Shown: one piece after another, positions 1,707-34,026 of the stretch
Layout: every line of letters begins with the position of its first letter
Numbering within the stretch: the stretch's first letter is position 1
Sequence record: NC_061451.1
DNA: 64,000 nucleotides
Strand: one strand, 5' to 3'
The notes under the pieces: generated by a model
The model's input: the letters and a program-made list of their open reading frames with translations, nothing else
Databases searched by the model: none
What the model was told of the DNA's origin: nothing
Made by a program: the position numbers and the translations under genes

Positions 1707-2490
1707 GGGTCCATACGGGCTAGTTGAGTCCGATAACCTTGTCCCACGTTGGACGTACCCTATTGTGCATGGTAGAGTTCGTCAGGTAGAAGCGTGGGAA
1801 CTTGATACGCTACCAAACGTTTCCACAGAAGTTCGTATGGTAAACGATATTCATGCAATTCACAGCACCCCCGTAGAGGATTATGATGACACAATCGACC
1901 TCGAAGCAGAAGCCGAAACGTATTCAAAAACTGAATCCCGACTTCTTATCAAACCTAAGCTCAATGAAATCAGAGCCCGTAAAAACCAAAGTAACACTGG
2001 TCCAGAGAACGTCTTCTCTGTAGCTCCTGAAGTTCTTGACCGTACGCTGGACAGCATTGATCAGCACAGCGAATCCTTCCGTGATTACCTGTTGCATCAA
2101 GTGTTCAGTCCAATCTTAGGCTTTGATATAGCGGCGGGTGAAGTCGAAGCAATTGCGCGTGATTGTCTCAAGACCCCTCTTGAGATCGACAGTGAACTCG
2201 TTCCCTATCTCGAACGAATCGGACTTGCTAATATCATAGGAGTGATGTTGGGCAAATCTGAGTCTGTACCAGAAATCGTGCGTGCAGACGTACTCAAAGA
2301 CTGGCTGATTAAGTCATTCGATGATATTCGTTTAGACAATAAAACGAAAGCTAACGGTACGAAGCTGCGTGATCAAATACGCCGCCTGATGCACGGTAAC
2401 GACGAGCTAGTTGCTCAAGGTGCTGGCATTGGTTCTACCCGAGGCTATTCGGAAGCGAGGAAGCAACAGAAAGAAAATGGCAAAGCCTAA
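1693..2490 (+). CDS. hypothetical protein upstream of terminase
   Basis: 265 aa ORF overlapping both neighbours. Confidence 0.7.
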   Translation: MKKFEGPYGLVESDNLVPRWTYPIVHGRVRQVEAWELDTLPNVSTEVRMVNDIHAIHSTPVEDYDDTIDLEAEAETYSKTESRLLIKPKLNEIRARKNQSNTGPENVFSVAPEVLDRTLDSIDQHSESFRDYLLHQVFSPILGFDIAAGEVEAIARDCLKTPLEIDSELVPYLERIGLANIIGVMLGKSESVPEIVRADVLKDWLIKSFDDIRLDNKTKANGTKLRDQIRRLMHGNDELVAQGAGIGSTRGYSEARKQQKENGKA

Positions 2491-5311
2491 GAAGGGTCCA
2501 GCCTTCCAACTTCGTCCCAAGCGCATAGCTGCATTCGATGCACTGCTTGGTGATGATTTTGAGGAGGCTTCATCTGAGGCGGAAGGGTTAGACTTCCTCT
2601 CAGAAAATAGCGCTAATGCCATAGACTTCCTTGAGAAAGGGGAAGTGAACGTAGTTGACTTGGTGGAGAGTGCGCTAGAGCAGCGTACCCTCGTACCACG
2701 CGACTTGAAGTTCGATGATAGCTCAATGCCGAAAGCAAAGAACTTCTTGGACTGGTGTACTAATCCAAAGTTCCTTAAAGCTGAGCCGTATCTTGAGCAG
2801 GCCATGATCGGTCTGCGTTTGTTTGGTGAGATCTGCGTAAGATGTTCGCCTAACCTACAATGGATGTATACAGAGAATCATGAGCCGCAGGAGGGTACTG
2901 CCGCTATCGGGAAGCATTTGCATCTTCTCCATAACGGTGTGTGTCCTCACTGCGGCGCTCGTCGTTCTGATATGATTCGTAACAAGGAGATTAACTTCTA
3001 CAACGAGCTGGCAGTGAATGCCGGTCAGCGTTGTGTGATTGCGTCTACGCCTGTAGCGACGAACAACGGCATCATGCCTATCGGTCACATGATGATCGGT
3101 CATGACACGCCTGGCTTCCACAAACCTCGTCGCAATTTCAGTGCGCACAACGGACGTGAGATCAAAAAGGTTAGTCAGGTCTATGTGTCAAGCGAGAGTC
3201 CTACCAAGGTCATTACACTCGCTAACGGCATCTGGATTGAAGCAACACACGATCACCCTATCCGTACAGAGACGGGCTTTAAGAAGACCGATAAACTCGT
3301 GCGTGGTGAACGTGTTGAAGTAGCTGTCGGCACGAACACGTGGGGCAAGATACAGCGTCCTACGACTATCTACGAAGCTGGATTGTCTACGCGTGAAGAT
3401 GCGTTGCGATACATTGCAGACAGATCGATTCCGTTCGGCGAAAGCAAGCTACAGTACGTCTCAGAGGACGTTGACGCGATTCAGATGGTATGGTCTATTC
3501 TGCTTAACGCGGGATTTGTGCCGAGCGTGCTGCATGGTGGCGAGGGTTATAGCGTTCTCTACTCTCTGACCGATGAGCCTCAGCGTTGTTCTAAGCACAT
3601 CGAGATCATGTTCGTTGAAGAGGGTACGCCGCAGATAACATACGACTTGCAGATGGAAGGTCTGCCTCAGTTCGTAGCGTCCGGCCTCGTACATCACAAC
3701 AGCGGTAAGTCAGTTGTTGTTGCAATGATCTCTACCTATCTGACGCACAGACTGCTTATGTCGCAGTCGCCTACGGGCATCTTGAGCATCGACAGCACAA
3801 CCGTATTGCACGGTACGTTCGTTGCTCTTACCCAGAAGCAAGCGGCAGATACATTGTGGACTCCCTACTTCAACTACATCATGGGCAGTCCCTGGTTCCA
3901 AGCATACCATGACCTGATTCGTAAACACGAACGGCGCTATGGTATCGAAGTAATGAAGATTCGTGACACGTTCATTCTGTACGGTCACCGTAGCTTTGTT
4001 ATTTATCCTGCAGGTCCTGATGGACGTATTCTTCGTGGTCGAACCCGTGTACTAGCGGTAATCGATGAAGTGGCGTATTTCGACAACGACGCCCAATCGA
4101 AGAAAATCAAAGTCAGTGCTAATGCCGTGTACGGCGCTCTCGACCGCTCGCTCGCCACTGTGCGTGCTAAGGAGAAGCGGCAAGTCGAAGCCGGATATGA
4201 TGAGGCGTTTACGGGTTACTTCTGCAACATTAGTAGCCCGGTACATGCACGCGACAAGATCAATGAACTGATGCGCATGGCAGTTGACTCGAAAACGTTG
4301 CTGGGCATTCATGCTCCTACGTGGAAGATGAACCCAGACATGCCGCGTGACTCAGAGTTCTTGCTCGAAGCGTTCCGTCGTGACCCTGTTGGTGCGGCGC
4401 GTGACTACGGTGCAGAAGCTCCGTTGTCTGCTAACCCGTTCATCACTCAGCCTATCTTTATCGAACAGGCGATACGTGATAAGGGTCGTTCGCTGTGCAG
4501 CTACACGCATCATATTCTACGTCACAAAGATGGCCAGAGACAGCGTTATGGTAGTCTCGTTAAAGCAGTTGAGACAAACAAGAACAGCATCCTCGCAATC
4601 GATGCGGGCTATTCAAACAACAGCTTCTCGCTGGTGACTGGTAGCCGTGACGAAGCAGGGATCATCTCGGTAGACTGCGTTGTGGAGATTATTCCTAAGC
4701 CAGGCATACCTCTCAACTACACGATGATATTCGATGAACTGCTTGTGCCTCTGTGTCGCCTGCGTAACGTTCGCGTAATGCTTGCCGACCAATGGCAGTC
4801 CCTCAAGCTGCTGCAGGATGCGAAGATCAAATGTCCTTCAATCGAAGCTGCCGACAAGTACAGTCTCAAGTATGAGGACATGTGGACAGTTAAGACGATG
4901 TTTGAATCTCAGCCGTCGCGTATCAGTCTGCCTCGTATGGGCTTTGCGAAGACCATTCAGGAAACGTTGCAGTATAACGGTGACGAGTACCCACACTGCT
5001 TTGAGAACAAGCCTACAGAGCACTTGGTGATGCAGCTACAGACGGTGCAAGACACAGGCCGAGGCGTTATCAAGAACACAGGTGCAACAGATGACTTGTG
5101 GCGTGCTATGGCTCTCATGGTATACGGCTTTGAGTGTGGTGAATATGAGGAGTTCTTGTCCACTCCTGCGAAAATCAGCGTTAACCGTGACCCGAATCGT
5201 CTGGGTCGTGTTGCTGGTCGTCTTAACAAAGGCGTTGCAGGGTCTAGTGGTAAGACAGCTCCTACTCGCGTTCTTGGTAGCGCTGCGACTCGTATGATTG
5301 GTCGCAAATAA
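2477..5311 (+). CDS. terL: terminase large subunit, intein-containing
   Basis: After intein removal Walker A reads AGQRSGKS; Walker B VLAVIDEVAYFD; RNase H nuclease ILAIDAGYS...DDLWRAMA; start MAKPKK at 2477 preferred over 2411. Confidence 0.9.
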   Translation: MAKPKKGPAFQLRPKRIAAFDALLGDDFEEASSEAEGLDFLSENSANAIDFLEKGEVNVVDLVESALEQRTLVPRDLKFDDSSMPKAKNFLDWCTNPKFLKAEPYLEQAMIGLRLFGEICVRCSPNLQWMYTENHEPQEGTAAIGKHLHLLHNGVCPHCGARRSDMIRNKEINFYNELAVNAGQRCVIASTPVATNNGIMPIGHMMIGHDTPGFHKPRRNFSAHNGREIKKVSQVYVSSESPTKVITLANGIWIEATHDHPIRTETGFKKTDKLVRGERVEVAVGTNTWGKIQRPTTIYEAGLSTREDALRYIADRSIPFGESKLQYVSEDVDAIQMVWSILLNAGFVPSVLHGGEGYSVLYSLTDEPQRCSKHIEIMFVEEGTPQITYDLQMEGLPQFVASGLVHHNSGKSVVVAMISTYLTHRLLMSQSPTGILSIDSTTVLHGTFVALTQKQAADTLWTPYFNYIMGSPWFQAYHDLIRKHERRYGIEVMKIRDTFILYGHRSFVIYPAGPDGRILRGRTRVLAVIDEVAYFDNDAQSKKIKVSANAVYGALDRSLATVRAKEKRQVEAGYDEAFTGYFCNISSPVHARDKINELMRMAVDSKTLLGIHAPTWKMNPDMPRDSEFLLEAFRRDPVGAARDYGAEAPLSANPFITQPIFIEQAIRDKGRSLCSYTHHILRHKDGQRQRYGSLVKAVETNKNSILAIDAGYSNNSFSLVTGSRDEAGIISVDCVVEIIPKPGIPLNYTMIFDELLVPLCRLRNVRVMLADQWQSLKLLQDAKIKCPSIEAADKYSLKYEDMWTVKTMFESQPSRISLPRMGFAKTIQETLQYNGDEYPHCFENKPTEHLVMQLQTVQDTGRGVIKNTGATDDLWRAMALMVYGFECGEYEEFLSTPAKISVNRDPNRLGRVAGRLNKGVAGSSGKTAPTRVLGSAATRMIGRK
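3032..3700 (+). mobile_element. intein (223 aa) in terminase Walker A, endonuclease largely lost
   Basis: Starts CVIASTPV, block B ATHDHPI, ends FVASGLVHHN followed by Ser. Confidence 0.9.
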
Positions 5312-5350: not shown

Positions 5351-5569
5351 ATGGAAAACAAGTTTTACAACCCACTGACAGCCGCCGAGACTGTAAAGTC
5401 ACAGTCAAGCACGGATAAGGCAGAAAGTACGAGCGGTGCGTTTCAAGTTGAAAACCCGAACGTCTGTCCTAAGTGCGCATCGTCTACTGTCCCCACTCAG
5501 TTACTTGACGGGGAACAGGTGATGTTCTGCACATCCTGCCGTGTGAGTCTCGCCATTCCATTGAAGTGA
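5351..5569 (+). CDS. small Zn-ribbon protein
   Basis: CPKC...CTSC, GAGGA RBS. Confidence 0.75.
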   Translation: MENKFYNPLTAAETVKSQSSTDKAESTSGAFQVENPNVCPKCASSTVPTQLLDGEQVMFCTSCRVSLAIPLK

Positions 5570-12546: not shown

Positions 12547-13317
12547 ATGAGCAATATCGATACCACAATGCCTGAAGGCAAATGGGAGTTCAACGAGTCG
12601 GTTGCTTGCGTGTTTGATAACATGCTGCAAAACTCCATCCCATCTTATGGCCGTATGCGTGACCTGACGTACCGTCTGGGTCGTCGCTTCGTAACTCCCG
12701 GTTCAGCTATCGTTGATCTCGGTGCTTCACTCGGCCGAGCTATCGAGCCGTTTGCAAAAGAGTTCGGCAAGTATGACTATCATCATGCTGCGGACGCGCC
12801 GGGCGAAGACTACGAAACAGGCAATCACTATAGCCTGTATGAAGTAGCTCCTGCTATGCGCGAACGTCTGGTGCAGAATGAAGTGCTCAACTCAGTGAAT
12901 GCCAAACTGGAAAGTGAATCGCTGGTAGATACTGACACGTTTATGTTCGACGGTCAGGTGCATTGCTCGTTGATTCTGAGTGTGCTAACTCTCCAGTTCA
13001 CGCCGATTGAACATCGTCAACACATTCTGGAGAACGTGTACAACTCGCTGCAACCAGGCGGCGCATTCATCCTCGTTGAGAAGGTGTTAGGTGATAACAA
13101 CTATCTCGACAAAATGCTGGTGGACACCTACTACCAGATGAAGGGCGGTAACGGTTACAGCGCCGAGTCGATTGCGACTAAACGTAAGTCACTGGAAGGC
13201 GTACTCGTTCCTGTTAAAGCAGCATGGAACGAAGAACTGTTGCGTAAAGCAGGCTTCGGTCAGGTAGAAAGTTTCTATCGTGACCTGAACTTCGCAGGAT
13301 GGATTGCTATTAAGTAA
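12547..13317 (+). CDS. cmoA: CmoA-like carboxy-S-adenosylmethionine synthase
   Basis: WEFNESVACVFDNMLQNSIPSY, VDLGASLG, TLQF, PGGAFILVEK, NGYS...KRKSL (Arg199 equivalent at 13183-13185), AGF...F..LNF, collinear with E. coli CmoA as recalled. Confidence 0.9.
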   Translation: MSNIDTTMPEGKWEFNESVACVFDNMLQNSIPSYGRMRDLTYRLGRRFVTPGSAIVDLGASLGRAIEPFAKEFGKYDYHHAADAPGEDYETGNHYSLYEVAPAMRERLVQNEVLNSVNAKLESESLVDTDTFMFDGQVHCSLILSVLTLQFTPIEHRQHILENVYNSLQPGGAFILVEKVLGDNNYLDKMLVDTYYQMKGGNGYSAESIATKRKSLEGVLVPVKAAWNEELLRKAGFGQVESFYRDLNFAGWIAIK

Positions 13318-13326: not shown

Positions 13327-14589
13327 ATGAAATTAAACGGGCGTATCTTAGCTATCGTCCCACACAAGACAATGCAAGACCGTACCAAGTCGGGTGTGGG
13401 TTCGTACATTGATGGGCTAGAGGCATACGGCTTCTGCGACTTTATCACAGACGGAGAGAACAGCTCCGTTACGAAAAGTCAGTGGTTCACTTATGGTGAC
13501 ACTACTCTCAGTGACGGTTATAAGATAGGGCATATCCAGAGCGAGTTGCTGATTGCACTTGAGCGCCTCCCATACCGTGCGATTATTTGCAGCACGTATG
13601 AGGCGATTGAAGCCTGTGTGTCTCTGGGACTGCCAAAGATTATGCCCGTTTACTATCGCACGCACAACAGCTTTTTGCTCACACAAGATCTCAAGGGTCT
13701 TGGTGCAGAGAAGATCCATCGTGCGTTGTTGCAAGCACGCGTCACAGGGCTGCGCATACTTGCTAACTGTGATTCGACTGCGATCAATCTTACTGAGCGC
13801 TATAAGACGCCAGCACACGTTGCCTACAACTCGTTCTCGGTGCCTGACTACAACCCACCAGCTCGGCGTTCTCCGCAACTGTTGATTATCTGTCGCTATG
13901 AGAAGGTCAAGCGCACGTTGTTTGCTGCGCGTATTGCTGCTGCATCAGGACTACCCGTTCGTGTTATGACAGGCAGTGATCGTCAAGCACGCAATTGGGA
14001 GAAAGAGCTGGCTGAGGCGGGCGTCAAAGAGTATACGGTCGTCAGTGGCCTTAGCGGCAAACAGAAACTCGAATTTATAGGCGCTTGCACCGTAGCCCTT
14101 TCTACTGCGAGCGTTGAATCATTTGCTAATGGTGTGCGTGAGTCTATCCCCTACTGTCCTACCTTTATCGTGCAAACATCCAAGTACGATTGGGCTAAGG
14201 ACTATACGCGCTTCTGTACCGCCGACAAGCATGTTCATATCAGAACTGTTGATCGCGTATCGGACCAAGCCGTAGCTGAAATCGGAAGTGAGATAGCGCA
14301 AACAGCTACCACTCGTTATCTGACAGGACCTCAGCGTAAGCAGCTACTGACTGCTTGGGCAAAGCAAGTTGATCGTGGTTGGTCCGACTTTGTTCAGAAG
14401 GCTGTTGTTGACGATGACGGCAAGCCGCTGCGCACCGAGCTGTATCAAGAACTGATCGACAAGTCAGAGATCGATTGGTCACAGACGCCCACGCTGATGC
14501 GTACTGTAAATGCGTTACATAAATGCCACGCTCGTTTGGGCCTGACATTTGATGGCACTAAAATCAAATATAAGAGGAAGCGCAAATGA
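13327..14589 (+). CDS. GT-B (GT4-like) glycosyltransferase
   Basis: SGVGSY N-terminal loop, CRYEKVKR, E-x7-E motif ESFANGVRE. Confidence 0.75.
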   Translation: MKLNGRILAIVPHKTMQDRTKSGVGSYIDGLEAYGFCDFITDGENSSVTKSQWFTYGDTTLSDGYKIGHIQSELLIALERLPYRAIICSTYEAIEACVSLGLPKIMPVYYRTHNSFLLTQDLKGLGAEKIHRALLQARVTGLRILANCDSTAINLTERYKTPAHVAYNSFSVPDYNPPARRSPQLLIICRYEKVKRTLFAARIAAASGLPVRVMTGSDRQARNWEKELAEAGVKEYTVVSGLSGKQKLEFIGACTVALSTASVESFANGVRESIPYCPTFIVQTSKYDWAKDYTRFCTADKHVHIRTVDRVSDQAVAEIGSEIAQTATTRYLTGPQRKQLLTAWAKQVDRGWSDFVQKAVVDDDGKPLRTELYQELIDKSEIDWSQTPTLMRTVNALHKCHARLGLTFDGTKIKYKRKRK

Positions 14590-15662
14590 GTGTTATCGGT
14601 GATATTTATAACATCCCACAACCGTTCGCAATGTATGTCGGGAATTGTGAGACGCGTGCTCAAGCCAAAGTTGCTGCTGGCACAATCGAGTGGGCGCCAG
14701 AGAAAGTGTGCTGCACCGTAGATGATGGTAACAACCTGTTCCCTAACGTACCTTCAATCAACCCTGCTGACGTGCATAAGACAGATGCAGAAACTTTAGT
14801 GATTGGCTGTGCACCTTTCGGCGGCCGCATTGACGAGCACATGGACAAAGCTATTCGTAGCGCTATCTATCGTGGCCGCAACATCGCTGCTGCTATGCAT
14901 ACGCGCCTGGCGGATAATCCTGAATACGTTGAGCTGGCTGATCGCTACAACGTCAAGCTGTATGACTTCCGCCATCGTCCTGATGCGTACCCACTCGGTA
15001 CTGGTGAGAAGCGTAGCGGTCTGCGTCTGTTAACTGTCGGTACTGATAGCTCATGCGGTAAGAAGTTTACCACGCTGTCTCTGTATCGTGAACTCAAAGC
15101 TATTCATGAAGCCACTACGTTCTGCTCTACTGGCCAGACGGGTTTCTTGATTAGCGGTTGCGGTATCAACAACGACACGATTGTTGCCGACTTCCTTGCT
15201 GGTGCCGCTGAATCACTTTCGCCTGATGGTCCTGCTGATCATGTTTATCTGATTGAGGGTCAAGGCGCTATCACGCACCCAGCATACACAGGCGGCAGTA
15301 TGAGTCTGATTGCTGGCTCGCAGCCTGATCATCTCATCCTGTGTCACGCATGGAACCGTCAGAATCAGTTGGGCGTTAAGCGTAAGCCTGACCTTGATTT
15401 CGAGATGCGTGCTAACATTGAAGCGGCACGTATTCACGGTCTCAACCCGACTTACATCGGTATCAGCATTAACTTCTCTGAGTGCGACCTCACCGCCGAT
15501 GAGCAAGATAAAATCCTGTACCAACTCGCATCAACGTATGAGATTCCCGTGTTCGACCCATCACAGGACACTTCTGTGTTGCGCGATCTCGCTCGTATGT
15601 TAGCAACTAAAGCCAAAGCAAGGAGCCTCGATGGCCAAGCATCAACTGCGCAAGCTGTTTGA
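14586..15662 (+). CDS. DUF1611 family protein (DgcN-like)
   Basis: LVIGCAPFGG, LLTVGTDSSCGKKFT, STGQTG, IEGQGAITHPAY, GSQPDHLILCH. Confidence 0.88.
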   Translation: MSVIGDIYNIPQPFAMYVGNCETRAQAKVAAGTIEWAPEKVCCTVDDGNNLFPNVPSINPADVHKTDAETLVIGCAPFGGRIDEHMDKAIRSAIYRGRNIAAAMHTRLADNPEYVELADRYNVKLYDFRHRPDAYPLGTGEKRSGLRLLTVGTDSSCGKKFTTLSLYRELKAIHEATTFCSTGQTGFLISGCGINNDTIVADFLAGAAESLSPDGPADHVYLIEGQGAITHPAYTGGSMSLIAGSQPDHLILCHAWNRQNQLGVKRKPDLDFEMRANIEAARIHGLNPTYIGISINFSECDLTADEQDKILYQLASTYEIPVFDPSQDTSVLRDLARMLATKAKARSLDGQASTAQAV

Positions 15663-16506
15663 ACAGCATGTGAAAAAAGAAGTGAAAGCAGACAAGGTAG
15701 CTGTGCTGCTTTCATCTGGCCTCGATGGTTTGGTCAGTGCGTTAGCTGCACACGACCTGGGCAAGAAGGTACATGCCTTCACATTCCAAATGGGTGACAA
15801 CCCTAGCTTTGACAGTCGCCACGCACAGGTCGTTGCACAGAAGATGGGATGGGAGTTCACTCTCGTTAAAGTTCCCACCAGCGTGTCTGCTATCGCGTTA
15901 GCGTGGCGCGTGCTACACTCCAAGTATCGCTGCATCAAGAAGCGTGACTATGAATGTGCGTACCCTATGGTCTATTGCTACAAGGCAATCAAAGACGCTG
16001 GGTATAAGTATGTGTTAAGCGGGCTGGTGGCCGATGGCTACTTCCTGTATAACCGTAACACGCACATTCAGAAAATCAGCGGCCCGCACTCTGACGCTCA
16101 GAAGTATCATGAGTTCCGTACTCAATACTTTAGTCCGTGGCTTAAACACGGTAAGAAGTCTCTGGGCGTTGACGGGTACAACCCGAGCGGTATGTTGCAG
16201 CATGAAATGTTGTGCGATAACTTCGGCCTGATTCACGTTAACCCGTGGATGCAGAACAAGGTGTTTGACTACTTCATCAAATACACTTGGCAGGAGCTGA
16301 ATCAGCCTAAGCAGAAGATGCCACTAACCGAAGCGTGGGCAGAACACATTGCTCTTGTTGGTCATCGCCCACACAGGGGCTATCAGACAGAAGCCAAAGT
16401 GCCTGAATACTTTGAGCATCTGATCGATAACCCTGAGATTAACTTTAACGGGCGCAAGCGCATCATGGACGTGGCACGCGACTGGTCCAAACGAGAGCCT
16501 GAATAA
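15631..16506 (+). CDS. AsnB-synthetase-domain ATP-dependent amide ligase lacking a glutaminase domain (CmoY-like)
   Basis: PP-loop LLSSGLDG, VLSGLVADGYF (AsnB VLSGEGADE), P..K..L; only 291 aa. Confidence 0.75.
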   Translation: MAKHQLRKLFEQHVKKEVKADKVAVLLSSGLDGLVSALAAHDLGKKVHAFTFQMGDNPSFDSRHAQVVAQKMGWEFTLVKVPTSVSAIALAWRVLHSKYRCIKKRDYECAYPMVYCYKAIKDAGYKYVLSGLVADGYFLYNRNTHIQKISGPHSDAQKYHEFRTQYFSPWLKHGKKSLGVDGYNPSGMLQHEMLCDNFGLIHVNPWMQNKVFDYFIKYTWQELNQPKQKMPLTEAWAEHIALVGHRPHRGYQTEAKVPEYFEHLIDNPEINFNGRKRIMDVARDWSKREPE

Positions 16507-17812: not shown

Positions 17813-18225
17813 CTTTGACCGACAGATGAGAGGCGTTCAAGTCTATACGCCTAGCGCACCGAAGAAAGACCCGAACCCCAAAGCGTGTCGTTACTTCACT
17901 CGCGTGTTCGGTGGCAAACAGTTGGTGTGGGGAACGGAAATTAGACCTATACGGGCCGACCGTTTTCTTAACTGAGTCTGTGTTCAAAGCGTGTGCGCTA
18001 CATCGTCTCGGTCTCAATTCGTGGTCTGTTTTAGGCTCGAACGTGAGTGACTATTTATACCACCAGCTTAGTCTTCTTGACCTGCGTTTTGTTTGTCTAG
18101 GTGATGCGGATAAAGCTGGTGAGGAGTTCAGTCAGACGTTTGGTCGTGGTGCTGTTAGTGCCGACTTGGACGAGATGACTGATGAGCAGTTACTCGATTT
18201 AACTCTACCACTATTAAGGAAATAG
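17709..18225 (+). pseudogene. Toprim-domain primase-like gene split by a +1 frameshift near 17940
   Basis: Frame A ends QLVWGTE; frame B continues LDLYGPTVFLTESVFKA...GDADKAG (Toprim E and DxD) and has no good start of its own. Confidence 0.7.
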
Positions 18226-19133: not shown

Positions 19134-19535
19134 ATGAGACCTGAAAACATTTCACGCACCTATCGCGTCGGTCAGTCTGACCTGGAGAAAGCACACAACG
19201 TCTGCGGAGAGAACAATGTAACACTCTCAGATGTGGTACGCAGATACATCGAAAGAATCGTACTGACTGAGGGTGAGTTCCTTATGAGCGAGCGTAAGCA
19301 CGTACCTGAGTCTCAACTGAATGTACGCCTGCCCTTTTACATTGCGCACTCCTTTGCATCTGTGTGTAAGTCTCGTGGTACGTTAGCCTCTAAAACCATT
19401 CTCAACTTTGTCAGGAATATTGCTCTTTCAGGTACTATCCCTGAGGAGTTAAAGTACGCCTCAGACACAGAGTTGCGTGCCTATATTACCTCCGAGCGCT
19501 CTCGCCTCGATGCACTGGAAGCAAAACTTAAATGA
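19134..19535 (+). CDS. tandem ribbon-helix-helix DNA-binding protein
   Basis: RTYRV...TLSDVVRRYIE and QLNVRLP...ASKTILNFVR. Confidence 0.6.
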   Translation: MRPENISRTYRVGQSDLEKAHNVCGENNVTLSDVVRRYIERIVLTEGEFLMSERKHVPESQLNVRLPFYIAHSFASVCKSRGTLASKTILNFVRNIALSGTIPEELKYASDTELRAYITSERSRLDALEAKLK

Positions 19536-20371
19536 TTCTAACTAGCCCCATTCGCTATCAGGGCAACAAGCGCACTCTGATGCCTCTTATTCTTGAACAT
19601 GCGCCTGTGAAGGATTGCGTTCGCATGATAGACGCATTCGGCGGTAGCGGTACTGTTGCGCTCAACATGCCTCACAAGTTTCGCATCTACAATGAATTGA
19701 GCACGCCTGTGTTTGAGATCGTCCAGTTGCTTGCGCATCAAGATCCGAAGAAAACGTTGGGTCAGATCAAGCGTATCGTCAAGCGTTTTTGTCTAACCAA
19801 TAGCAGCCAAGACAACTACGACATGTTCCGCGCGTATGTGCAGAAGAAGCCTAGCCCTCTTCACCATTACATCGCACACAGGCATGCACGCTCTAACATG
19901 CTGCGCTTCAACCAGAAAGGCATCTACAACGTGCCGTTCGGCGAGCGGGGCCTGATTGGCAAGTTCGATCAGCTCGAACAGGAGCTGGTGCAGTTCCACG
20001 AGCGTATGCAGAACACGCACATCACCAACATGCGCTACAACATGTTGCTCAAGTCTGTGTCAAAGCATATCGGACCTAACACGTTCATTTACTTTGACCC
20101 TCCGTATCTTGCTAGCGGTGCGATGCAATACGGTAAGTGGACTGAGCACAACGAACGCAACCTGCTGTCCGTACTTGAGTATCTGAATCGTCAAGGCTGC
20201 CCGTGGATGTTGAGCAACGTTCTCCAACATCGGCATCACACGAACGACCTGCTCAAACGCTGGCTAAAGAAACACGCAACGACTGTCATCTATCCTGACA
20301 AGTCTTATTCAATGGCCAACTCTCATTCCGATAGTCACAGCACTATCGAGATCCTGGCAATGAACTACTGA
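19532..20371 (+). CDS. dam: DNA adenine methyltransferase (Dam/D12 class)
   Basis: SPIRYQGNK, DAFGGSG, YFDPPY, WMLSN. Confidence 0.92.
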   Translation: MILTSPIRYQGNKRTLMPLILEHAPVKDCVRMIDAFGGSGTVALNMPHKFRIYNELSTPVFEIVQLLAHQDPKKTLGQIKRIVKRFCLTNSSQDNYDMFRAYVQKKPSPLHHYIAHRHARSNMLRFNQKGIYNVPFGERGLIGKFDQLEQELVQFHERMQNTHITNMRYNMLLKSVSKHIGPNTFIYFDPPYLASGAMQYGKWTEHNERNLLSVLEYLNRQGCPWMLSNVLQHRHHTNDLLKRWLKKHATTVIYPDKSYSMANSHSDSHSTIEILAMNY

Positions 20372-23284: not shown

Positions 23285-23669
23285 TCAGTTACGTGATCAA
23301 TTGACCGAAGCTGAATACGCAGAACTTGAGCGCACTACAGCGCGGTCGATCATGGAACAAGTGTGGGCACTACGCGGCTGGACGGTAAAGCTCGACTGGT
23401 GCAACTATATGTGCGACGACGTTGATTGGTTATTCCATGGTAATGAGCGTAAAGCACCAGTTGATCACGCTATGCCGAATTCTGGTGTTGGCACTAGCAT
23501 TGAGCAGCATCGCCTTAATGTCGTGTTTACTCCTACTGAGGTTAGCGTTACGAACTCACTGGTAGACAGCCCTGTCACGGGCACTGGTATGTCACTGCGC
23601 TGTGCTTACTGCGCGTGGCTTTTAGAAATCGAAAAACAAAAGGCTGCCAATGCGCTGCAATCTGACTGA
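23271..23669 (+). CDS. hypothetical protein (NinX/DUF2591-like?)
   Basis: P....GTSIEQHRLNV...G.SLR.A pattern. Confidence 0.55.
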   Translation: MSSVNQLRDQLTEAEYAELERTTARSIMEQVWALRGWTVKLDWCNYMCDDVDWLFHGNERKAPVDHAMPNSGVGTSIEQHRLNVVFTPTEVSVTNSLVDSPVTGTGMSLRCAYCAWLLEIEKQKAANALQSD

Positions 23670-24165
23670 ACTGCCTATCAAACTCGATCAGGCTGAAAAC
23701 ATTATGGGCAGCGTGTTCGCGCTTGCTGCTGGCTCCAAGTCCAAACGCCGTGCTACTGCGGCAATGCTCATTCACTTCCATGAAGGCTACCCTACCATTA
23801 TCAGTAGTGGCGTCAATGGTACTGTGCCCGGTGAGAGCAACGTGTGTGAGAATGAAGACCTCACTCTGACGTTTGCGCACGTCACCCACGCAGAAGCTAA
23901 CTGCCTCAATCGCATGGACGAATACAGTCTGTGGCCAGAAGAAGAGGACATCCTGTTTTGTACTGACAGCCCATGTCCTGATTGTTTGCAGCAACTCGAA
24001 TCTGCTGGTGTGCAGACCATCATTTATGCGCGTGAATACAGACTCACAGAGCACCTGGATAAGTCTGCTATTCGCATGTATTGTCTCGATATTGAGAACG
24101 TGCGGGCGTCTTTGCTGAAATCTGTAAATCGTATAGACGAAGTGATTGCAACCATACCTACTTAA
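23650..24165 (+). CDS. dCMP deaminase
   Basis: SGVNG.PG, HAEAN, SPCPDC Zn motifs. Confidence 0.9.
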   Translation: MRCNLTELPIKLDQAENIMGSVFALAAGSKSKRRATAAMLIHFHEGYPTIISSGVNGTVPGESNVCENEDLTLTFAHVTHAEANCLNRMDEYSLWPEEEDILFCTDSPCPDCLQQLESAGVQTIIYAREYRLTEHLDKSAIRMYCLDIENVRASLLKSVNRIDEVIATIPT

Positions 24166-27470: not shown

Positions 27471-27774
27471 TGAGTTCTGGTCCTCTCCTGCTTCTGCGTT
27501 CGCACCCACTGTTGTAATCATCTCATGGTTTGTGTTCTGTGAGATTCGTGAACGCCGTGCGTTACGTGCAGCACAGCGCGTTGTAGCAAGTGGCTGGGAG
27601 CCTGTTGAACACGCCACGTATCAACACAAATGGCTGCCGTGGGTGAAGTGCTATGTCATGTTCTATACTGTCAGTCTGAACGATAAGTTCATGCCTGCTG
27701 TGTACGTGCTAAGAGGCAAGCATAGCTCTGAAATCCCCATGCACAAATTCCATTCTCGTTGGAGTTTAGTATGA
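27436..27774 (+). CDS. hypothetical membrane protein
   Basis: One TM segment. Confidence 0.55.
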   Translation: MMENFLKYLWSDEFWSSPASAFAPTVVIISWFVFCEIRERRALRAAQRVVASGWEPVEHATYQHKWLPWVKCYVMFYTVSLNDKFMPAVYVLRGKHSSEIPMHKFHSRWSLV

Positions 27775-28088
27775 CACCCCTTATTATGTTTGACGCACGA
27801 ACCATTCGCGTACTCAAGCAAAGTTTCGGTCAGGACAAACCTTTCGTTGTTGCTGGGCTGAACCCAATCGTTGGCAACAAAGGTGATCGTGTTACTCTCG
27901 CTAATGCCTGTAGCGTAGTCGCCATCCCTCGTGTGATGGGACTTGAAGTAGGTCAAGTGCTTTACGTAGGAACGGATGATGAAGTCTACGCATGGCCTTC
28001 TGATATGGTGATGGAATTTGCTTCTGTCTCTGATAACCAAACTCGGACCATTGCTTATGCATTGCGTCCAATACTCTCGGATGATTAA
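27771..28088 (+). CDS. hypothetical protein
   Basis: GGAG RBS. Confidence 0.6.
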   Translation: MTPLIMFDARTIRVLKQSFGQDKPFVVAGLNPIVGNKGDRVTLANACSVVAIPRVMGLEVGQVLYVGTDDEVYAWPSDMVMEFASVSDNQTRTIAYALRPILSDD

Positions 28089-28090
28089 AA

Positions 28091-29191
28091 ATGACAGGTC
28101 CTCTCGATCTCACTAACCCACAGCACTTCGAACTGTACTCGCTGCACAGCGTTGATGCACAGTATATCAATCTGTGTGACGCACTCCTCACTCAGGGTAC
28201 GCACGAATCTGACCCAGAGCGCACTACTGATACGTGGCATACGCTGATCGGTATTGGCTTCCAGTTGTCTAACACCAACATCGCTTTCCCTGCGCTGCTG
28301 TCTAAGCGTGTCAACGTCCGTGCAGCTATCGATGAATCATGCTGGTTCGCACGCGGTGAAACGAACATCGCAACTCTCGGTTCTAAAATCTGGAACGAGT
28401 GGGCAGACGAAGAAGGTGAGAACGGTCCTATCTACGGCTTCCAGTATCGCAACTGGCCTGACATTAAAGTGTTCAATACTGTCGAAGGTATGATTGAGCA
28501 GCACATCCCACCAGCAATGATTGAGCGCATCTCGAAAGAGATCAACCGCATGAAGGCGCAGGGCTATATCGAAACTGCGTTGCCTGATGGTCGCGTGCTG
28601 TATGAAGGCTATATCGATCAGTACGCTGATGCACTACGTCAAATCATGGCGCGTAGTCGTAGCCGCCGCATTCGTGTGCAAGCGTTCAACCCTGGTTACG
28701 TTGGTATGCAGAGCCTGCCTCCGTGTCACACTGAGTTTGAGTTCAACGTGACCAAAGCTACTGCGTATGAAATTGCGCAGATGGAAGCACGCTCAATGCG
28801 TCCTGACGCCGACTCACTGCATATCGTGGTGACGATGCGCAGCAATGATGCACTTCTCGGGCGCCCCTTCAACATCGTTGGCTACAGCGCCATGCACCAG
28901 TTGTTTGCGAAGTGGGCGGGTCTGAACGTTGGTTCGTTTACTCTGAATGTGACCAATATGCACATGTACGATCACCACCGCGAAGCGTATGCACAACAGC
29001 GTGAGCAGTGGCTGGAACTACAGACGCAGATGCAGACGACAGGCAAACCTGTTGTTTACCCTACCCTCGAAATCACTGACGACATTCTGGGCCTGACGCC
29101 AGAAGAGCTGCTGGATAACGTCAACGTCGATTGGTTCGAGCTGGTGGACTACTCTCCTAAACCTGCTGTTAAAGGACGCGTAACCAAATGA
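28091..29191 (+). CDS. thyA: thymidylate synthase
   Basis: IWNEWAD, GPIYGFQYRNW, SRR, LPPCH, RSND..LG.PFN, HMY. Confidence 0.93.
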   Translation: MTGPLDLTNPQHFELYSLHSVDAQYINLCDALLTQGTHESDPERTTDTWHTLIGIGFQLSNTNIAFPALLSKRVNVRAAIDESCWFARGETNIATLGSKIWNEWADEEGENGPIYGFQYRNWPDIKVFNTVEGMIEQHIPPAMIERISKEINRMKAQGYIETALPDGRVLYEGYIDQYADALRQIMARSRSRRIRVQAFNPGYVGMQSLPPCHTEFEFNVTKATAYEIAQMEARSMRPDADSLHIVVTMRSNDALLGRPFNIVGYSAMHQLFAKWAGLNVGSFTLNVTNMHMYDHHREAYAQQREQWLELQTQMQTTGKPVVYPTLEITDDILGLTPEELLDNVNVDWFELVDYSPKPAVKGRVTK

Positions 29192-29850
29192 TGCTAATCA
29201 GCCGCATTGCTGCATTCCTGTATGTTGGGTATGCAGAGTCAGTGGAAGATATTCCACGTTTGCTCGTCGAAAAAGTTAAGGTGCGCATCGAAGATCCCGA
29301 TTGGGACCCGTTTGATGACGTTACCGTTGAAGATGCACCGCCTATTCTCGAAATGACAGGCAAGGTCATCTATCATCTGCCGCTCAACTGCTTCCTGATT
29401 GACGGTCGCATGGAGCAGGACGAATCGTCCGAAGATACTCTCAAGATGCAGAAGTATTGTCAGACCAACTTCTTCAAGCACAAGCAGACGCGTAATGGCC
29501 GTGTAGGCATTGCCGTGGACAGCATGATCAGAGAACTGTCTTATGCAGAGGCACAGCACCCTAACTGGCCTACTGAGCCTCTGCACGCTGGTGCTATCCT
29601 TGCAGAAGAAGCTGGTGAGTGTCTGCGTGATTGCGTGTCATACGATGAAACAGGGCGTGAAGATCTGCTTGCATCTATGGCAGAAGAAGCGGTGCAGACA
29701 GGCGCTATGGCGATTCGTTTTCTGATCAATGCGCATCGCTCTAAAGAGCGCACGCTGCCTCGCTCTACAGTCCGTGACCTGCTGTCAGACACATCCATTC
29801 CTCTGGCTGAGCGTGTTGCTAAACTTCTTGATGTGGTGGACGCTAAATGA
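29188..29850 (+). CDS. protein with C-terminal MazG-like NTP pyrophosphohydrolase domain
   Basis: ILAEEAGE...EEAVQTGAMAIRFL. Confidence 0.6.
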   Translation: MMLISRIAAFLYVGYAESVEDIPRLLVEKVKVRIEDPDWDPFDDVTVEDAPPILEMTGKVIYHLPLNCFLIDGRMEQDESSEDTLKMQKYCQTNFFKHKQTRNGRVGIAVDSMIRELSYAEAQHPNWPTEPLHAGAILAEEAGECLRDCVSYDETGREDLLASMAEEAVQTGAMAIRFLINAHRSKERTLPRSTVRDLLSDTSIPLAERVAKLLDVVDAK

Positions 29851-30758
29851 AACTACTTGCACTTATTCCAGCTGCTACCACCAATGTTTTCCGCACGCTG
29901 CATTGTGTAGGCACGGCAGAAGAGTTCCCTGTAGGCGAGCATCCTAAGTGGTCTGGCTTTGGTTTGAATATGACTAACGTCAAAATCATTCCTGACCTGG
30001 CTAAAGACGCCGTGCCTGATTCGTTCTACGTCACTATCGATAGCCACCTCGACTGGTCTGTTGATCTTGATCGTATCGATACATTCAGCGCTGATTATCT
30101 CATCTGGTGCGGTAAGCATACGCCTTCAATTGAAGCTGTGCTCGAAGCCCACATGATTAAAGGCCAGCTGCCGAATCTGGTGCAGGACTTCGATGCTTTT
30201 GTCGCTGATCTGCAAGAGCGTCTGGACAACATGACCAGCCTAGCCAAAGATCGTATGACCATCTCAGGCAGCACGCTGATCGATAGCGACACCACAGCCA
30301 AGTATAACCTGTGGGCTATCTATCGTCACTGTCTAATGTTGGACAACAAGATGGTCCTGCTGTACGGTAAAGACAATCACATCCATGTGTCCGACACGCA
30401 CGTATCTGAAAAGGGTATCGGCTGGTGGTTGACCGAGCACAACAAACACATGATGAGCATTGCACAGCAAAACGATCTGCTGGCCGCTTACATTACGTTT
30501 GAGCGCGATAGCTCTGGCTATACGTTTGTTGGTGCTGACGGTACTCAGGTTAAACGTCCTGTCGAGAGCAGCGAGTTCATGCACATGGCGCATCACGGCC
30601 TGTTCCCTAAAGTGGTAGTGCGTGAAGACGCAGACGGCCGTAACTTTGAACTGTCGTTTGATTACGCCGAATACTTCCCGCAAGCGTATCACGATTTCGT
30701 CAATCATGCGTGGGCCGGCCGTTCTGATCGTTCACGCGATTTGGTTCGCTTCGTCTGA
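29847..30758 (+). CDS. hypothetical protein
   Basis: 303 aa ATGA-coupled ORF. Confidence 0.7.
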   Translation: MKLLALIPAATTNVFRTLHCVGTAEEFPVGEHPKWSGFGLNMTNVKIIPDLAKDAVPDSFYVTIDSHLDWSVDLDRIDTFSADYLIWCGKHTPSIEAVLEAHMIKGQLPNLVQDFDAFVADLQERLDNMTSLAKDRMTISGSTLIDSDTTAKYNLWAIYRHCLMLDNKMVLLYGKDNHIHVSDTHVSEKGIGWWLTEHNKHMMSIAQQNDLLAAYITFERDSSGYTFVGADGTQVKRPVESSEFMHMAHHGLFPKVVVREDADGRNFELSFDYAEYFPQAYHDFVNHAWAGRSDRSRDLVRFV

Positions 30759-30809
30759 TCGTTGCGCTGTCTGCTGTCAGTAATTTGAAGCTACTATAGG
30801 AGACAGCGC

Positions 30810-31148
30810 ATGAAATATGATAAGACCAAAGACTACCAACCGTTCAAGTATCTTGAGCCGGACCCAAAGGCTCCAAGAGTAGGCTTCTACGGTTCGACTG
30901 GCCACACTGTCACAAAGGACGTTCTGATAGGGCAGGACGTATGCGAGTTTGAGTTCAAGCCTGAAGAGTTGAACAATATGAATCGCGGTACGCTGCTCTT
31001 CCGTGCTAAAGATAGTGGCGGAACTATTGTCGTAAAGAAATGCTCTGTGCTTGGATTGAAAATGGTAATTACGCTAGAGAGAAGGGTGATTCAGTTCGGC
31101 AAGGTTCAAGCTGAATGGATGACCACATCCCGACTGTATAACTACTAA
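30810..31148 (+). CDS. hypothetical protein
   Basis: AGGAG RBS. Confidence 0.65.
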   Translation: MKYDKTKDYQPFKYLEPDPKAPRVGFYGSTGHTVTKDVLIGQDVCEFEFKPEELNNMNRGTLLFRAKDSGGTIVVKKCSVLGLKMVITLERRVIQFGKVQAEWMTTSRLYNY

Positions 31149-31190
31149 CTGTAAATACATTGTACAGAAGCAACTACAAGAGAAAAGAGA

Positions 31191-31889
31191 ATGGCAAAAA
31201 TTGCTAAAGCAAAGGAAGGGAAAAAGAAAAGCAACCCTATGTTGATTGACCTGAAAAAGTTCAAGTCAGTTAAACAGCTTAAGGGTGCGAAGTACAACCC
31301 TCGTTTCATTACAGACAGCCGACTGAGAGCGCTCGAAGGTTCTTTGGGCAGCTTCGGTGATTTGTCTGGCGTGGTGTTCAACAACAGCGTAGACAGTGGC
31401 GTATTGATCTCAGGCCACCAGCGTCTCAAGTCGATTGAGAAGTGGGACTCGCGCATTGAGATTCAACAAACGTCTGACAAGTACGGCACGGTAGCGTTGG
31501 GTTATATCCATGCTACCAGCGCCAAAGGTAAAACGATCAGCATCCCACTGCGTATCGTTAACTGGTCAGATAAGAAAGTGGAGTTTGCTGCTAACATTGC
31601 TGCGAATGCCCACGGCGGTGAGTTCGATAACAAAAAGCTCGCGTCTCTTGTTGAGAAGCTGGACCTGACTACAATCAAGCCAGCTCTTATCGGGCTTGAC
31701 CCGTTAGAGATTCGCGGCCTGCAACAGACGCTGAGCAAACAAGCTATCGTCGAGCAGGAAAAGCGTGTTGGTAAAACAACAGGCAAAATGAACGGCAGTA
31801 CTGGCGAGTTCAAAGAGTACACGACTGATGAAGTTGGTACTGCGCTGACCTGCACCTGCCCACGTTGTGGCTTTAAGTTCGAGGGATAA
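31191..31889 (+). CDS. ParB/Srx-like domain protein with C-terminal Zn ribbon
   Basis: KYNPR, SFGDLSGVVFN, LISGHQRLK; CTCPRCGFKF. Confidence 0.8.
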   Translation: MAKIAKAKEGKKKSNPMLIDLKKFKSVKQLKGAKYNPRFITDSRLRALEGSLGSFGDLSGVVFNNSVDSGVLISGHQRLKSIEKWDSRIEIQQTSDKYGTVALGYIHATSAKGKTISIPLRIVNWSDKKVEFAANIAANAHGGEFDNKKLASLVEKLDLTTIKPALIGLDPLEIRGLQQTLSKQAIVEQEKRVGKTTGKMNGSTGEFKEYTTDEVGTALTCTCPRCGFKFEG

Positions 31890-31890
31890 C

Positions 31891-34026
31891 ATGATCATCA
31901 AGCCGCCTACAATGAAAGAGATTAATAAGCTGCCCAAGCCTTGGTCAGGTATGAGTTTCTTTGCAGGTTGCGGTGGTTCATCTACCGGTCACAAGATGGC
32001 CGGTATTAACATCCTACTGAGCAACGAGTTCGTGGACGCGGCTCGTGAATCGTATGAAGCGAACCATCCAACAACCAAAGTGTTGCCCCACGATATTCGT
32101 CGTCTTGACCCGAAAAAGCTGCTTAGCTATTGCGGCCTGAGTCAGGGCGAACTGGACTTGCTCGACGGCAGTCCTCCGTGCTTCACCGAAGACACGTTCA
32201 TTCATACCGACACTGGTATGAAGTTCATCACTGATATGCGCATCGGTGACTTCGCTATGACCTCTGTTGGTAAGTATCATCCAGTGTATGACACGATGGT
32301 ACGTCCGTATGACGGTCAGATGCACAGAATTGAAACGCTGCTTGGTCAGAACAATGCAACGCCTGAACATCCGTTCTTTGTTCGTCGTCAGAATGAAGAA
32401 ACTGGCGGGTACAGTGAGCCGTTCTGGTGTGACGCTAAAGATGTGCAGGAAGGTGACCTGTTAGGTACGCCTCGTGTTACGCCTGATATGGGCGAAGCAC
32501 ACACGCATGAGATTATCTCGTCGTTGACTGCGCAGCTTGTGCGTTGGATTGCATTGCCTGAGTTCTGGTGGCTGATTGGTCACTGGTGCAATCGCGGTGC
32601 AATCGATAAGATTCGTGGTGTCGATGTTATTCAATTCACCTCGATGACAGCGATGGAAAACTCGCTGGTGGAACAAGCGTTCGACGTGCTCAAGTTAAGC
32701 AGCATCAACAGCGCTTCGTCCGACATGGGCGTTCATCGTAAGACCGTTCGTGTTGTTATGGACACAGACCTGTTGCTGTTCTTGCGTATGTTTATCGCGC
32801 AGGGCAAGAAGTCTATGTCCCGCCGTCTGCCTGGCATGATCTTCCATCTGGCTAAAGAGCTGAAACAGCAATTCATTCTCGGCTATCTGGGTCGTGATTA
32901 CGTCACAGCAATGGGCGTTGGTCATGCGTTAGAGGCTGACTCAAAGCGCTTCCTAGTTGAGATGAATTACCTGTGCTGCTCTGCGTTCAACAGACCGCTG
33001 TTCGATGCAATGTTGTTCACTGACTTGCATTACGGTAGTCCGATGTTACCACCGAGTCGCTTCATTACCAAAGAGCACATCGGCTTCCTGTTCTTGCAAG
33101 AAGAGGTTAATTTCTTCTTTGAGTTCGAGCCGGAAGACCCGCATCTGTGGGTTGAAGTGATTGAGAACTTTACGCATCATGAAACGTGCAACGTCTATAA
33201 CTTCTCAGTCAGTGTTGATGAGACGTATGTTGCTAACGGCATGGTCGTGCATAACTGCAAAGGGTTCTCGACTGCTGGCGTGAAAGAAGACGGCTGGGGC
33301 AAAGAGGTTAAGTACAGCGGCAACAAGTATCAGCAAGTCGATGACCTGTTCGATCAGTATTGCCGTATGCTCAAGCACATGCAGCCTAAAACGTTCACTG
33401 CGGAAAACGTTAGTGGCCTCGTTAAAGGTGCGTCGAAGGGTTACTTCATTGAAATCATGAAGACCTTTGATCAGCTGGGCTACTATGTGCGAGCGCCGTT
33501 GCTTAATGCTGCGTGGCTTGGTGTGCCTCAGTCTCGTGAGCGTATCATCTTTATGGGTGTGCGCAAAGACGTGGCGAAAGCACTCGGCTATAAAACTGCG
33601 TTGACTGCTGTGCCTGATGTAACACCTCAATCAAGCATGGCGTTCCTTGCAGATGCATTGCCGAACATTCGTCGCTATAAAGGTACGGAGCGTGACATTA
33701 TCAAGTATCTGCCTGCTGTTAACGGCCCGATGCCTACGATTACCGCTGCTGATGCTATCGCATACGAAACAGCACGCTTCTCCTCTGCTGGCTTCATTGA
33801 AGACGACAAAGGGCACAGACGCAAGCTGACGATTGACGAACTCAAAGTTGTGTCAGGCATGCCTAGTGATTACGTGCTCACAGGTAAGTTTGAAGAACAA
33901 TGGGAACGTCTCGGTCGTGTGTGCGTACCTGCAATGACGTGTGCTGCGGCAAGCGCGTTGATACGCCATGTGCTTGAGCCTTACGCGAAGCTGCGTAAAA
34001 AGAAACCTGGGGATCGTTTTCGTTAA
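31891..34026 (+). CDS. DNA cytosine-C5 transferase (Dcm fold), predicted carboxymethyltransferase (CmoX-like), intein-containing
   Basis: Motif I FFAGCGG, IV GSPP|CKGFS, VI ENVSGL, VIII PQSRERI; motif X reads LGRVCVP instead of GN(S/A)V. Confidence 0.88.
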   Translation: MIIKPPTMKEINKLPKPWSGMSFFAGCGGSSTGHKMAGINILLSNEFVDAARESYEANHPTTKVLPHDIRRLDPKKLLSYCGLSQGELDLLDGSPPCFTEDTFIHTDTGMKFITDMRIGDFAMTSVGKYHPVYDTMVRPYDGQMHRIETLLGQNNATPEHPFFVRRQNEETGGYSEPFWCDAKDVQEGDLLGTPRVTPDMGEAHTHEIISSLTAQLVRWIALPEFWWLIGHWCNRGAIDKIRGVDVIQFTSMTAMENSLVEQAFDVLKLSSINSASSDMGVHRKTVRVVMDTDLLLFLRMFIAQGKKSMSRRLPGMIFHLAKELKQQFILGYLGRDYVTAMGVGHALEADSKRFLVEMNYLCCSAFNRPLFDAMLFTDLHYGSPMLPPSRFITKEHIGFLFLQEEVNFFFEFEPEDPHLWVEVIENFTHHETCNVYNFSVSVDETYVANGMVVHNCKGFSTAGVKEDGWGKEVKYSGNKYQQVDDLFDQYCRMLKHMQPKTFTAENVSGLVKGASKGYFIEIMKTFDQLGYYVRAPLLNAAWLGVPQSRERIIFMGVRKDVAKALGYKTALTAVPDVTPQSSMAFLADALPNIRRYKGTERDIIKYLPAVNGPMPTITAADAIAYETARFSSAGFIEDDKGHRRKLTIDELKVVSGMPSDYVLTGKFEEQWERLGRVCVPAMTCAAASALIRHVLEPYAKLRKKKPGDRFR
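32179..33255 (+). mobile_element. intein (359 aa) with degenerate LAGLIDADG endonuclease
   Basis: Starts CFTEDT, block B ATPEHPF, ends YVANGMVVHN; +1 residue is the catalytic Cys. Confidence 0.92.

Follow-up and report, generated by a model that had tools for sequence, protein, structure and literature searches.

The gp052 Locus

The stretch of DNA analysed here (the window) comprises bases 1–64000 of Erwinia phage pEa_SNUABM_7 (NC_061451.1 / MZ475896.1), a jumbo myovirus (265.6 kb; genus Snuvirus) with Erwinia amylovora as its host. Its gene gp052 is predicted to encode a DNA cytosine C5-carboxymethyltransferase of the CmoX family that is interrupted by an intein at the catalytic Cys. An earlier reading made from the letters alone (the sequence-only reading) had singled out an Arg in this gene, in place of the canonical Asn of motif X, as a signature of specificity for carboxy-S-adenosylmethionine (Cx-SAM). 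The features of the gene, with lengths in amino acids (aa), are as follows.

31891..34026, + strand: gp052, predicted CmoX precursor gene, 711 aa, annotated 'hypothetical protein'; C5-methyltransferase (C5-MTase) fold carrying an intein
31891..32178, + strand: N-extein, aa 1–96, with motif I FAGCGGSS (31960–31983), cofactor contacts and the S-P-P of motif IV
32179..33255, + strand: predicted intein, 359 aa, CFTEDT...VVHN, between S-P-P and the motif-IV Cys
33256..34023, + strand: C-extein, 256 aa, starting at the catalytic Cys (TGC 33256–33258), with the target-recognition region and motifs IX–X
33403–33411, + strand: ENV, in the C-extein
33529–33543, + strand: QSRER (QxRxR), in the C-extein
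33901..33930, + strand: motif X, W-E-R-L-G-R-V-C-V-P, with the canonical Asn replaced by Arg (CGT 33916–33918)

The reading frame is open to 34026 from either a GTG at 31867 or an ATG at 31891 (2,136 nt from the ATG). We regard the ATG as the start because the homologs of gp052 begin with MIIKPP or MLIKPP. Pfam PF00145 (C-5 cytosine DNA methylase) matches the protein with E 6e-38 in two pieces that are split by the intein/Hint matches, and NCBIfam TIGR00675 (dcm) matches above its cutoff (8e-35). The residues S94-P95-P96 close the N-extein and the Cys opens the C-extein, so the SPPC loop is contiguous only once the intein is removed. Promoter and terminator scans around gp052 gave fewer sites than in shuffled sequence.

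Signatures of the CmoX Family in gp052

The CmoX family of DNA cytosine C5-carboxymethyltransferases was described in December 2025 (Yang et al., Nat Commun 2025; PMC12783734). Its member from Synechococcus phage S-B43, SpCmoX (PDB 8YF3), forms 5-carboxymethylcytosine (5cxmC) in GC motifs from Cx-SAM that is supplied by a phage CmoA. In the crystal structure the carboxymethyl group of the cofactor is touched by R350, which replaces N304 of M.HhaI. Cx-SAM is the sole cofactor accepted by the wild type, and the R350N variant is inactive with both S-adenosylmethionine (SAM) and Cx-SAM. The authors remark that the R350 arrangement mirrors the engineered M.MpeI N374K (PMC12783734), for which a salt-bridge rationale has been given (PMC12015181). 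They gathered 5,615 candidate CmoX sequences by exactly the combination of SPPC and R350 (PMC12783734).

The window Arg occupies the same position. Translation gave WERLGRVCVP at 33901–33930 and the Arg codon CGT at 33916–33918 exactly as the sequence-only reading had reported. The residue is aa 684 in the longest, GTG-started open reading frame (ORF; 31867..34026), aa 676 in the annotated ATG-started protein YP_010303193.1 (31891..34026) and aa 317 in the spliced product. With phmmer against the PDB, the best match of the C-extein is 8yf3_A (whole chain, E 5.8e-33), and a second, ungapped stretch of this chain (E 1.4e-05) places the Arg on chain residue 350. The same pairing with SpCmoX R350 is seen in a MAFFT column, and the S-B43 genome confirms that SpCmoX residue 350 is Arg and residues 95–98 are SPPC.

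For the comparison with M.HhaI we used a profile of five CmoX-type sequences (the spliced window protein and four intein-free relatives), which aligns with M.HhaI (E 1e-28) and M.HaeIII (E 2e-39) over their entire length. The profile stretch 'erlGr' lands on 'KQFGN' of M.HhaI, that is, G303-N304 in 'QFGNSVV', and the same column lands on 'MIGN' ('IGNAVP') of M.HaeIII. The claim that the Arg stands at the position of the motif-X Asn therefore holds in both the ungapped alignment to SpCmoX 350 and the profile alignment to M.HhaI N304. An Arg lying off N304, which the sequence-only reading had named as one outcome that would speak against it, was not what we found for M.HhaI. The three-way alignment that it had proposed came out in part: SpCmoX and M.HhaI are aligned through motif X, while the M.MpeI matches (4dkj/8c56; single sequence and profile) cover profile positions 71–283 only and end before motif X. 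The equivalence of the window Arg with M.MpeI N374 is accordingly taken from the literature.

Conservation was assessed in 121 sequences, namely the window protein plus the 120 database homologs that match it best. SPPC, ENV and QxRxR are invariant (121/121), and the equivalents of the cofactor contacts F25, E47, F48 and D69 are invariant or nearly so. When the residues are mapped through the alignment, F25/E47/F48/D69/S95/P96/P97 of SpCmoX pair with F24/E46/F47/D68/S94/P95/P96 of the window protein. The motif-X column holds Arg in 115 sequences, Asn in four (GNSV/GNAV, the canonical motif) and Met in two, and the Arg is kept in all five phage genera compared.

An AlphaFold2 (AF2) model of the spliced 352-aa protein, built from an alignment of database homologs, has a predicted local distance difference test score (pLDDT) of 93.6 and a predicted template modelling score (pTM) of 0.92. 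Its top Foldseek match in the PDB is 8yf3 (E 7e-27, template modelling (TM) score 0.75/0.79), ahead of M.HhaI; this entry is titled 'DNA cytosine C5-carboxymethyltransferase in complex with Cx-SAM'. All the published CmoX signatures that can be tested in silico (fold, SPPC, R350-type Arg, ENV, QxRxR and cofactor contacts) are thus present in gp052.

Met represents a third state of the motif-X position, beside Arg and Asn. SPPC-bearing homologs with Met ('IGMSVPP', 'LGMSVPP') were seen in Flavobacterium phage Fpv11 (L010:4704-5768) and in P0130 and P0137; the CmoA matches include no Flavobacterium phages. One homolog with Asn at this position (P0087) sits on a 5-kb contig.

An Intein at the Catalytic Cysteine

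The insert in gp052 has the splicing residues Cys1, a block B TPEH (intein residues 61–64), a terminal HN and Cys+1. In an alignment with nine relatives, a block of 349–359 aa is found between S-P-P and the motif-IV Cys. It is present in five genera of Erwinia/Dickeya jumbo phages (Snuvirus, Sasquatchvirus Y3, Alexandravirus AD1, Yoloswagvirus and Rivsvirus) and precisely absent from the homologs of Pseudomonas phage PaBG, Synechococcus phage S-B43 (SpCmoX), Streptomyces phage TurkishDelight and Moraxella phage Mcat8, and from P0028 and P0029. The last two are intein-free homologs that are ≈70% identical to gp052, and the P0029 contig has a Dam-type methylase, a deoxycytidine monophosphate (dCMP) deaminase and a thymidylate synthase upstream of CmoX, arranged as they are in the window. 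Because of Cys1, TPEH, the HN/Cys+1 junction and the precise insertion, the insert is identified from its sequence as a class-1 intein in which the catalytic Cys of the enzyme itself serves as the +1 nucleophile. Protein splicing of gp052 is predicted from these intact motifs. The C-terminal intein model TIGR01443 (intein_Cterm) matches above its cutoff (17.2 vs. 15.6).

The central ≈240 aa of the intein gave no endonuclease family in Pfam or PDB sequence searches. When the intein alone was searched against the PDB sequences nothing significant was found, the lone match (E 7.8) being to the termini of another intein. Distant and weak relatives of the intein carry PF14528 (LAGLIDADG_3), and the central domain may be a diverged LAGLIDADG endonuclease.

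The motif-IV Cys appears, from sequence comparison, to be a recurrent site of intein insertion because other inteins, unrelated or shorter, occupy the same site in two CmoX homologs and the equivalent site in an unrelated enzyme. P0031 is a CmoX homolog of 602 aa with another intein at the same position before the Cys, and P0044, of 506 aa, has a mini-intein there. P0023 is an unrelated C5-MTase with an intein at the equivalent site (SWP|C...TDLS) that is weakly related to that of the window. We found no report of an intein in any C5-MTase or CmoX in the literature searched.

The gene for the terminase large subunit (TerL) of the window (2477..5311, + strand, 944 aa) shows a weak Intein_splicing match at aa 228–408 (E 0.003), and inteins have been reported in TerL of related phages in the PaBG paper. 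The window would then contain two inteins.

The Neighboring ParB-Like Gene and the Distant CmoA Operon

A ParB-like gene lies directly upstream of gp052, and homologs of the other components of the CmoX pathway are encoded elsewhere in the window:

31191..31889, + strand: gp051, ParB-like gene, PHROG 620 'ParB-like partition protein' (E 2.3e-31)
12547..13317, + strand: CmoA homolog (carboxy-SAM synthase), annotated 'tRNA methyltransferase', TIGR00740 CmoA (E 1.2e-39)
13327..14589, + strand: GT-B-like (glycosyltransferase fold) protein of 420 aa within the CmoA operon, AF2 model pLDDT 82.7
14586..15662, + strand: DUF1611/DgcN-like protein, PF07755 (2e-46), PF17396 (5e-18), PDB 7xrj (4e-53)
15631..16506, + strand: CmoY homolog (Asn-synthase-like ATP-dependent amide ligase without glutaminase domain), PF00733 (1.8e-13)

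The stop codon of gp051 ends one base before the ATG of gp052. Pfam PF02195 was not detected in gp051, and ParB-like genes also stand directly upstream of the CmoX homologs of PaBG, TurkishDelight, Y3 and AD1. Many published CmoX candidates are found near CmoA, an adenosine monophosphate (AMP)-forming ligase and a ParBc-domain gene, with ParBc on 1,660 CmoX contigs (PMC12783734).

The CmoA homolog has its best PDB matches in E. coli CmoA (4gek, E 4e-28) and YecO (1im8), and it also matches PHROG 4752 (3e-78). The window CmoY homolog shares 33% identity with SpCmoY over 275 aa (BLASTP, E 1e-50) and 24% with the AsnS-like protein of PaBG (E 5e-16). The DUF1611 protein matches NF041892 (DgcN) with 2e-86, which is below the cutoff of that model. 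For the 420-aa protein there was no sequence match in Pfam, NCBIfam, PHROG or the PDB; it has only seven homolog clusters, one of them with PF00534. Foldseek matched its model to GT4/GT-B enzymes (E 2e-10 to 6e-9, TM score 0.5–0.6), including SenB, GlgM, BshA and the phage HY126 glycosyltransferase. Judged from this model, the protein may act as a glycosyltransferase on the hypermodified base or on a precursor of it.

The composition of the cassette varies with the genus. In the window the order is CmoA, 420-aa protein, DUF1611 and CmoY; AD1 has CmoA-DUF1611-CmoY, and in Y3 and Yoloswag a 2-oxoglutarate (2OG)-Fe(II) oxygenase comes after CmoA-CmoY. This suggests different end products on a common 5cxmC handle, and hints, as a matter of speculation, at a lineage-specific elaboration of the carboxymethyl group.

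That the motif-X Arg ties gp052 to this distant operon, as the sequence-only reading had proposed, is supported by the CmoA and CmoY homologs of the window and by three independent comparisons. The PaBG orthologs are contiguous (ParB-like, CmoX, CmoA, one further gene and Asn synthase). In the phage collection, CmoX-type and CmoA-type matches each occur in 48 Erwinia and two Dickeya records, in which CmoA is always near 12–13 kb and CmoX near 28–35 kb. A methyltransferase, an asparagine synthase, a 'transcriptional repressor' and a DNA-cytosine methyltransferase are common to AD1 and Y3 and absent from the related Dickeya phage JA11 (Day et al., 2018; PMC6143709); the methyltransferase is CmoA and the 'transcriptional repressor' is the ParB-like gene.

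A 311-kb metagenomic phage contig (L015:11847-13787) has an Arg-type CmoX homolog beside a chorismate mutase (PF01817), followed by a 261-aa gene without a recorded Pfam match and then Asn synthase. The product of chorismate mutase is prephenate, the co-substrate of CmoA, and this phage may itself make the prephenate that Cx-SAM synthesis requires. In the window, the two ORFs immediately upstream of the cmoA homolog do not include a chorismate mutase, and no CmoB-type enzyme was seen near this homolog.

Predicted Function of gp052

Taken together, the motif-X Arg, the other CmoX signatures and the CmoA and CmoY homologs make it highly probable, from sequence and homology, that gp052 encodes a Cx-SAM-dependent DNA cytosine C5-carboxymethyltransferase of the CmoX family. 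The proposal that the Arg is a carboxy-SAM signature is supported, as the residue is equivalent to SpCmoX R350 and is accompanied by the remaining signatures.

In the pathway that we propose, the 711-aa precursor would excise the 359-aa class-1 intein and join S-P-P to the +1 Cys, giving the SPPC loop. The unspliced precursor should be inactive because this catalytic loop arises only by splicing. The phage CmoA homolog would, by homology, convert SAM and prephenate into carboxy-SAM. By analogy with SpCmoX, the motif-IV Cys of the spliced 352-aa enzyme would attack C6 of a flipped-out cytosine, and Arg317 (spliced numbering) would pair with the carboxylate of Cx-SAM; here the residue equivalence is established and the chemistry is carried over from SpCmoX. 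With the carboxylate held by Arg317, the -CH2-COO- group would be moved to C5 to give 5cxmC. In SpCmoX-containing phage S-B43, the asparagine-synthase-like ligase CmoY adds glycine after CmoX, and 5-glycyl-carboxymethylcytosine (5gcxmC) was found in the virion DNA (PMC12783734). The CmoY homolog of the window would probably adenylate the carboxylate and ligate an amine, and further elaboration of the product may fall to the GT-B-like and DUF1611 proteins, both of which are speculative steps. The purpose is likely to be the shielding of phage DNA from host nucleases.

Several observations weigh against this assignment. The activity of gp052 and its DNA product are predictions from sequence, and the literature searched holds no report of modified DNA in Erwinia/Dickeya jumbo phages. 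The family is not uniform at the motif-X position, as the four Asn and two Met sequences show. The CmoA homolog falls below the TIGR00740 equivalog cutoff (136 vs. 193 bits), and its gene lies 18.6 kb from gp052 (13317 to 31891) with no evident co-regulation. The intein scores in Pfam are sub-threshold, both for Intein_splicing (E 1.8e-08, 34.8 bits vs. a cutoff of 35.8) and for Hint_2 (21.9 vs. 28.4 bits). Finally, the GC specificity of SpCmoX is not transferable to gp052 because the target-recognition region differs (31% C-extein identity, large indels).

One alternative, which we consider very improbable, is that gp052 is a disabled relic whose intein splices poorly or not at all, the Arg being a fossil of a former CmoX. 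It would fit a catalytic loop that is split by the intein, the sub-threshold Pfam scores and a homing-endonuclease domain that is not recognizable. It would also fit the fast evolution of the intein centre, which is 32–63% identical among the five phage genera, compared with 50–77% for the intein ends. Yet the frame is open over the entire 2,136 nt, and Cys1, TPEH, HN and Cys+1 are intact here and kept in Y3, AD1, Yoloswag and SNUABM_5. Across the five genera the exteins are 74–90% identical and the intein only 39–66%; this better conservation of the exteins fits a functional host protein with a selfish insert. In addition, ≈20 protein clusters share the intein-bearing architecture of ≈700 aa.

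Also very improbable is an ordinary SAM-dependent C5-MTase that makes 5-methylcytosine (5mC), with the Arg neutral or structural. The fold and catalytic motifs are indeed those of M.HhaI and M.HaeIII, close homologs with Asn exist (4/121 sequences), and engineered N-to-K enzymes keep some SAM activity (PMC12015181). The natural Arg enzyme SpCmoX, however, took only Cx-SAM, and the Arg is kept in 115/121 sequences and in all five genera. The CmoA and CmoY homologs of the phage would moreover be left without a partner, there being no CmoB-type enzyme near the cmoA homolog. The Arg-to-Asn revertant that the sequence-only reading had suggested as a test would probably not yield an enzyme that makes 5mC, since SpCmoX R350N is inactive with both cofactors.

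The use of Cx-SAM on a target other than phage double-stranded DNA (dsDNA), e.g., RNA or host DNA, as a weapon against the host rather than for self-protection is likewise very improbable: CmoA chemistry originates in tRNA modification and some enzymes of the C5-MTase fold (DNMT2) act on tRNA, but the closest characterized relative modifies dsDNA and has 5gcxmC in its virion DNA, the ParB-like DNA-binding partner is conserved, and DNMT2-type matches are far weaker than those to DNA MTases.

Other Genes of the Window

The thymidylate synthase gene (28091..29191, + strand, 366 aa) has an insertion of ≈50–100 residues relative to bacterial ThyA, and its PDB matches are split at about aa 124/171. 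A full replacement of deoxycytidine (dC), which would leave CmoX without substrate, was considered and, on the evidence of the sequence, rejected, since this thymidylate-synthase-like protein matches genuine ThyA structures and not dCMP hydroxymethylases among the matches listed.

The same early region encodes a dCMP deaminase (23650..24165, + strand) and a Dam-type N6-adenine methyltransferase (19532..20371, + strand). Because of the latter, the phage DNA probably also carries N6-methyladenine (6mA). Two short genes annotated in RefSeq as 'DNA ligase' (72 aa; 5351..5569, + strand) and 'DNA primase' (81 aa; 17980..18225, + strand) are far too short for these functions and are probably fragments or mis-annotations.

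Implications

The single-residue signature is already known, as the CmoX family has been defined in print by SPPC together with R350. The CmoX paper describes neither an intein at the catalytic Cys nor additional GT-B-like and DUF1611/DgcN-like genes in the CmoA operon, and it contains no mention of inteins or of Erwinia/Dickeya phages (PMC12783734).

A bolder extension, which we hold to be rather doubtful, is that carboxymethylation in this clade of jumbo phages is gated by splicing and conditionally timed, that the Snuvirus operon builds a modification beyond 5gcxmC, and that the sister genera differ in their end products. Conditional splicing could time DNA modification because the precursor is necessarily inactive. 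If this were true, the Snuvirus end product might be, e.g., a glycosylated and/or acylated amide.

The analysis argues for a re-annotation of gp052 and its orthologs in ≈50 deposited genomes of Erwinia/Dickeya jumbo phages as probable DNA carboxymethyltransferases. It predicts that phages used for the biocontrol of fire blight and soft rot carry 5cxmC-derived cytosines, which, if true, would bear on resistance to host restriction and on the sequencing, cloning and restriction mapping of phage DNA. The CmoA/CmoX/CmoY pathway would thereby reach enterobacterial jumbo phages with tractable hosts, and its genes need not cluster. The intein-split enzyme and the operons with glycosyltransferase-like, DgcN-like and oxygenase genes could be natural variants for new hypermodified bases.

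Comparison with Known Systems

M.HhaI and M.HaeIII share the fold and, as predicted, the catalytic mechanism of gp052. Unlike gp052, they have G-N-S/A-V in motif X and (F/P)PCQ instead of SPPC-K/S/A in motif IV, and they are without CmoA association. In the carboxymethyltransferases M.MpeI N374K and M.MedI N377K, the motif-X Asn has been exchanged for a positive charge to pair with the Cx-SAM carboxylate, as would be the case for gp052. These are laboratory mutants of CpG methyltransferases that have Lys rather than Arg and retain SAM activity.

The insert of gp052 resembles class-1 inteins in phage replication and nucleotide-metabolism proteins in its Cys1...His-Asn/Cys+1 residues, its location in the most conserved catalytic loop and its sporadic presence among relatives. 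It differs from the known examples in its CmoX-type host protein, in a +1 nucleophile that is the catalytic Cys and in a centre without a recognizable endonuclease family.

SpCmoX has in common with gp052 the C5-MTase fold, SPPC, ENV, QxRxR, the F25/E47/F48/D69 contacts and the Arg at 350, and phage S-B43 likewise encodes CmoA and a CmoY-type ligase. The identity is ≈31% over the C-extein and 37–39% overall, and the target-recognition region of gp052 is different and shorter, with large indels. Furthermore, gp052 has the intein at SPP|C and the ParB-like gene upstream, it lies 18.6 kb from cmoA whereas the two genes are adjacent in S-B43, and the window operon has the extra GT-B-like and DUF1611 genes.

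Among named phages, PaBG has the closest relative that is free of an intein, gp177, which is annotated 'DNA cytosine methylase' and is 48% identical to the C-extein. In PaBG the pathway is contiguous (gp176 ParB-like, gp177, gp178 CmoA-like and gp180 Asn synthase), in contrast to the window. The two phages share the ERLGR motif, the ParB-like gene upstream (gp176 in PaBG) and a jumbo-myovirus background.

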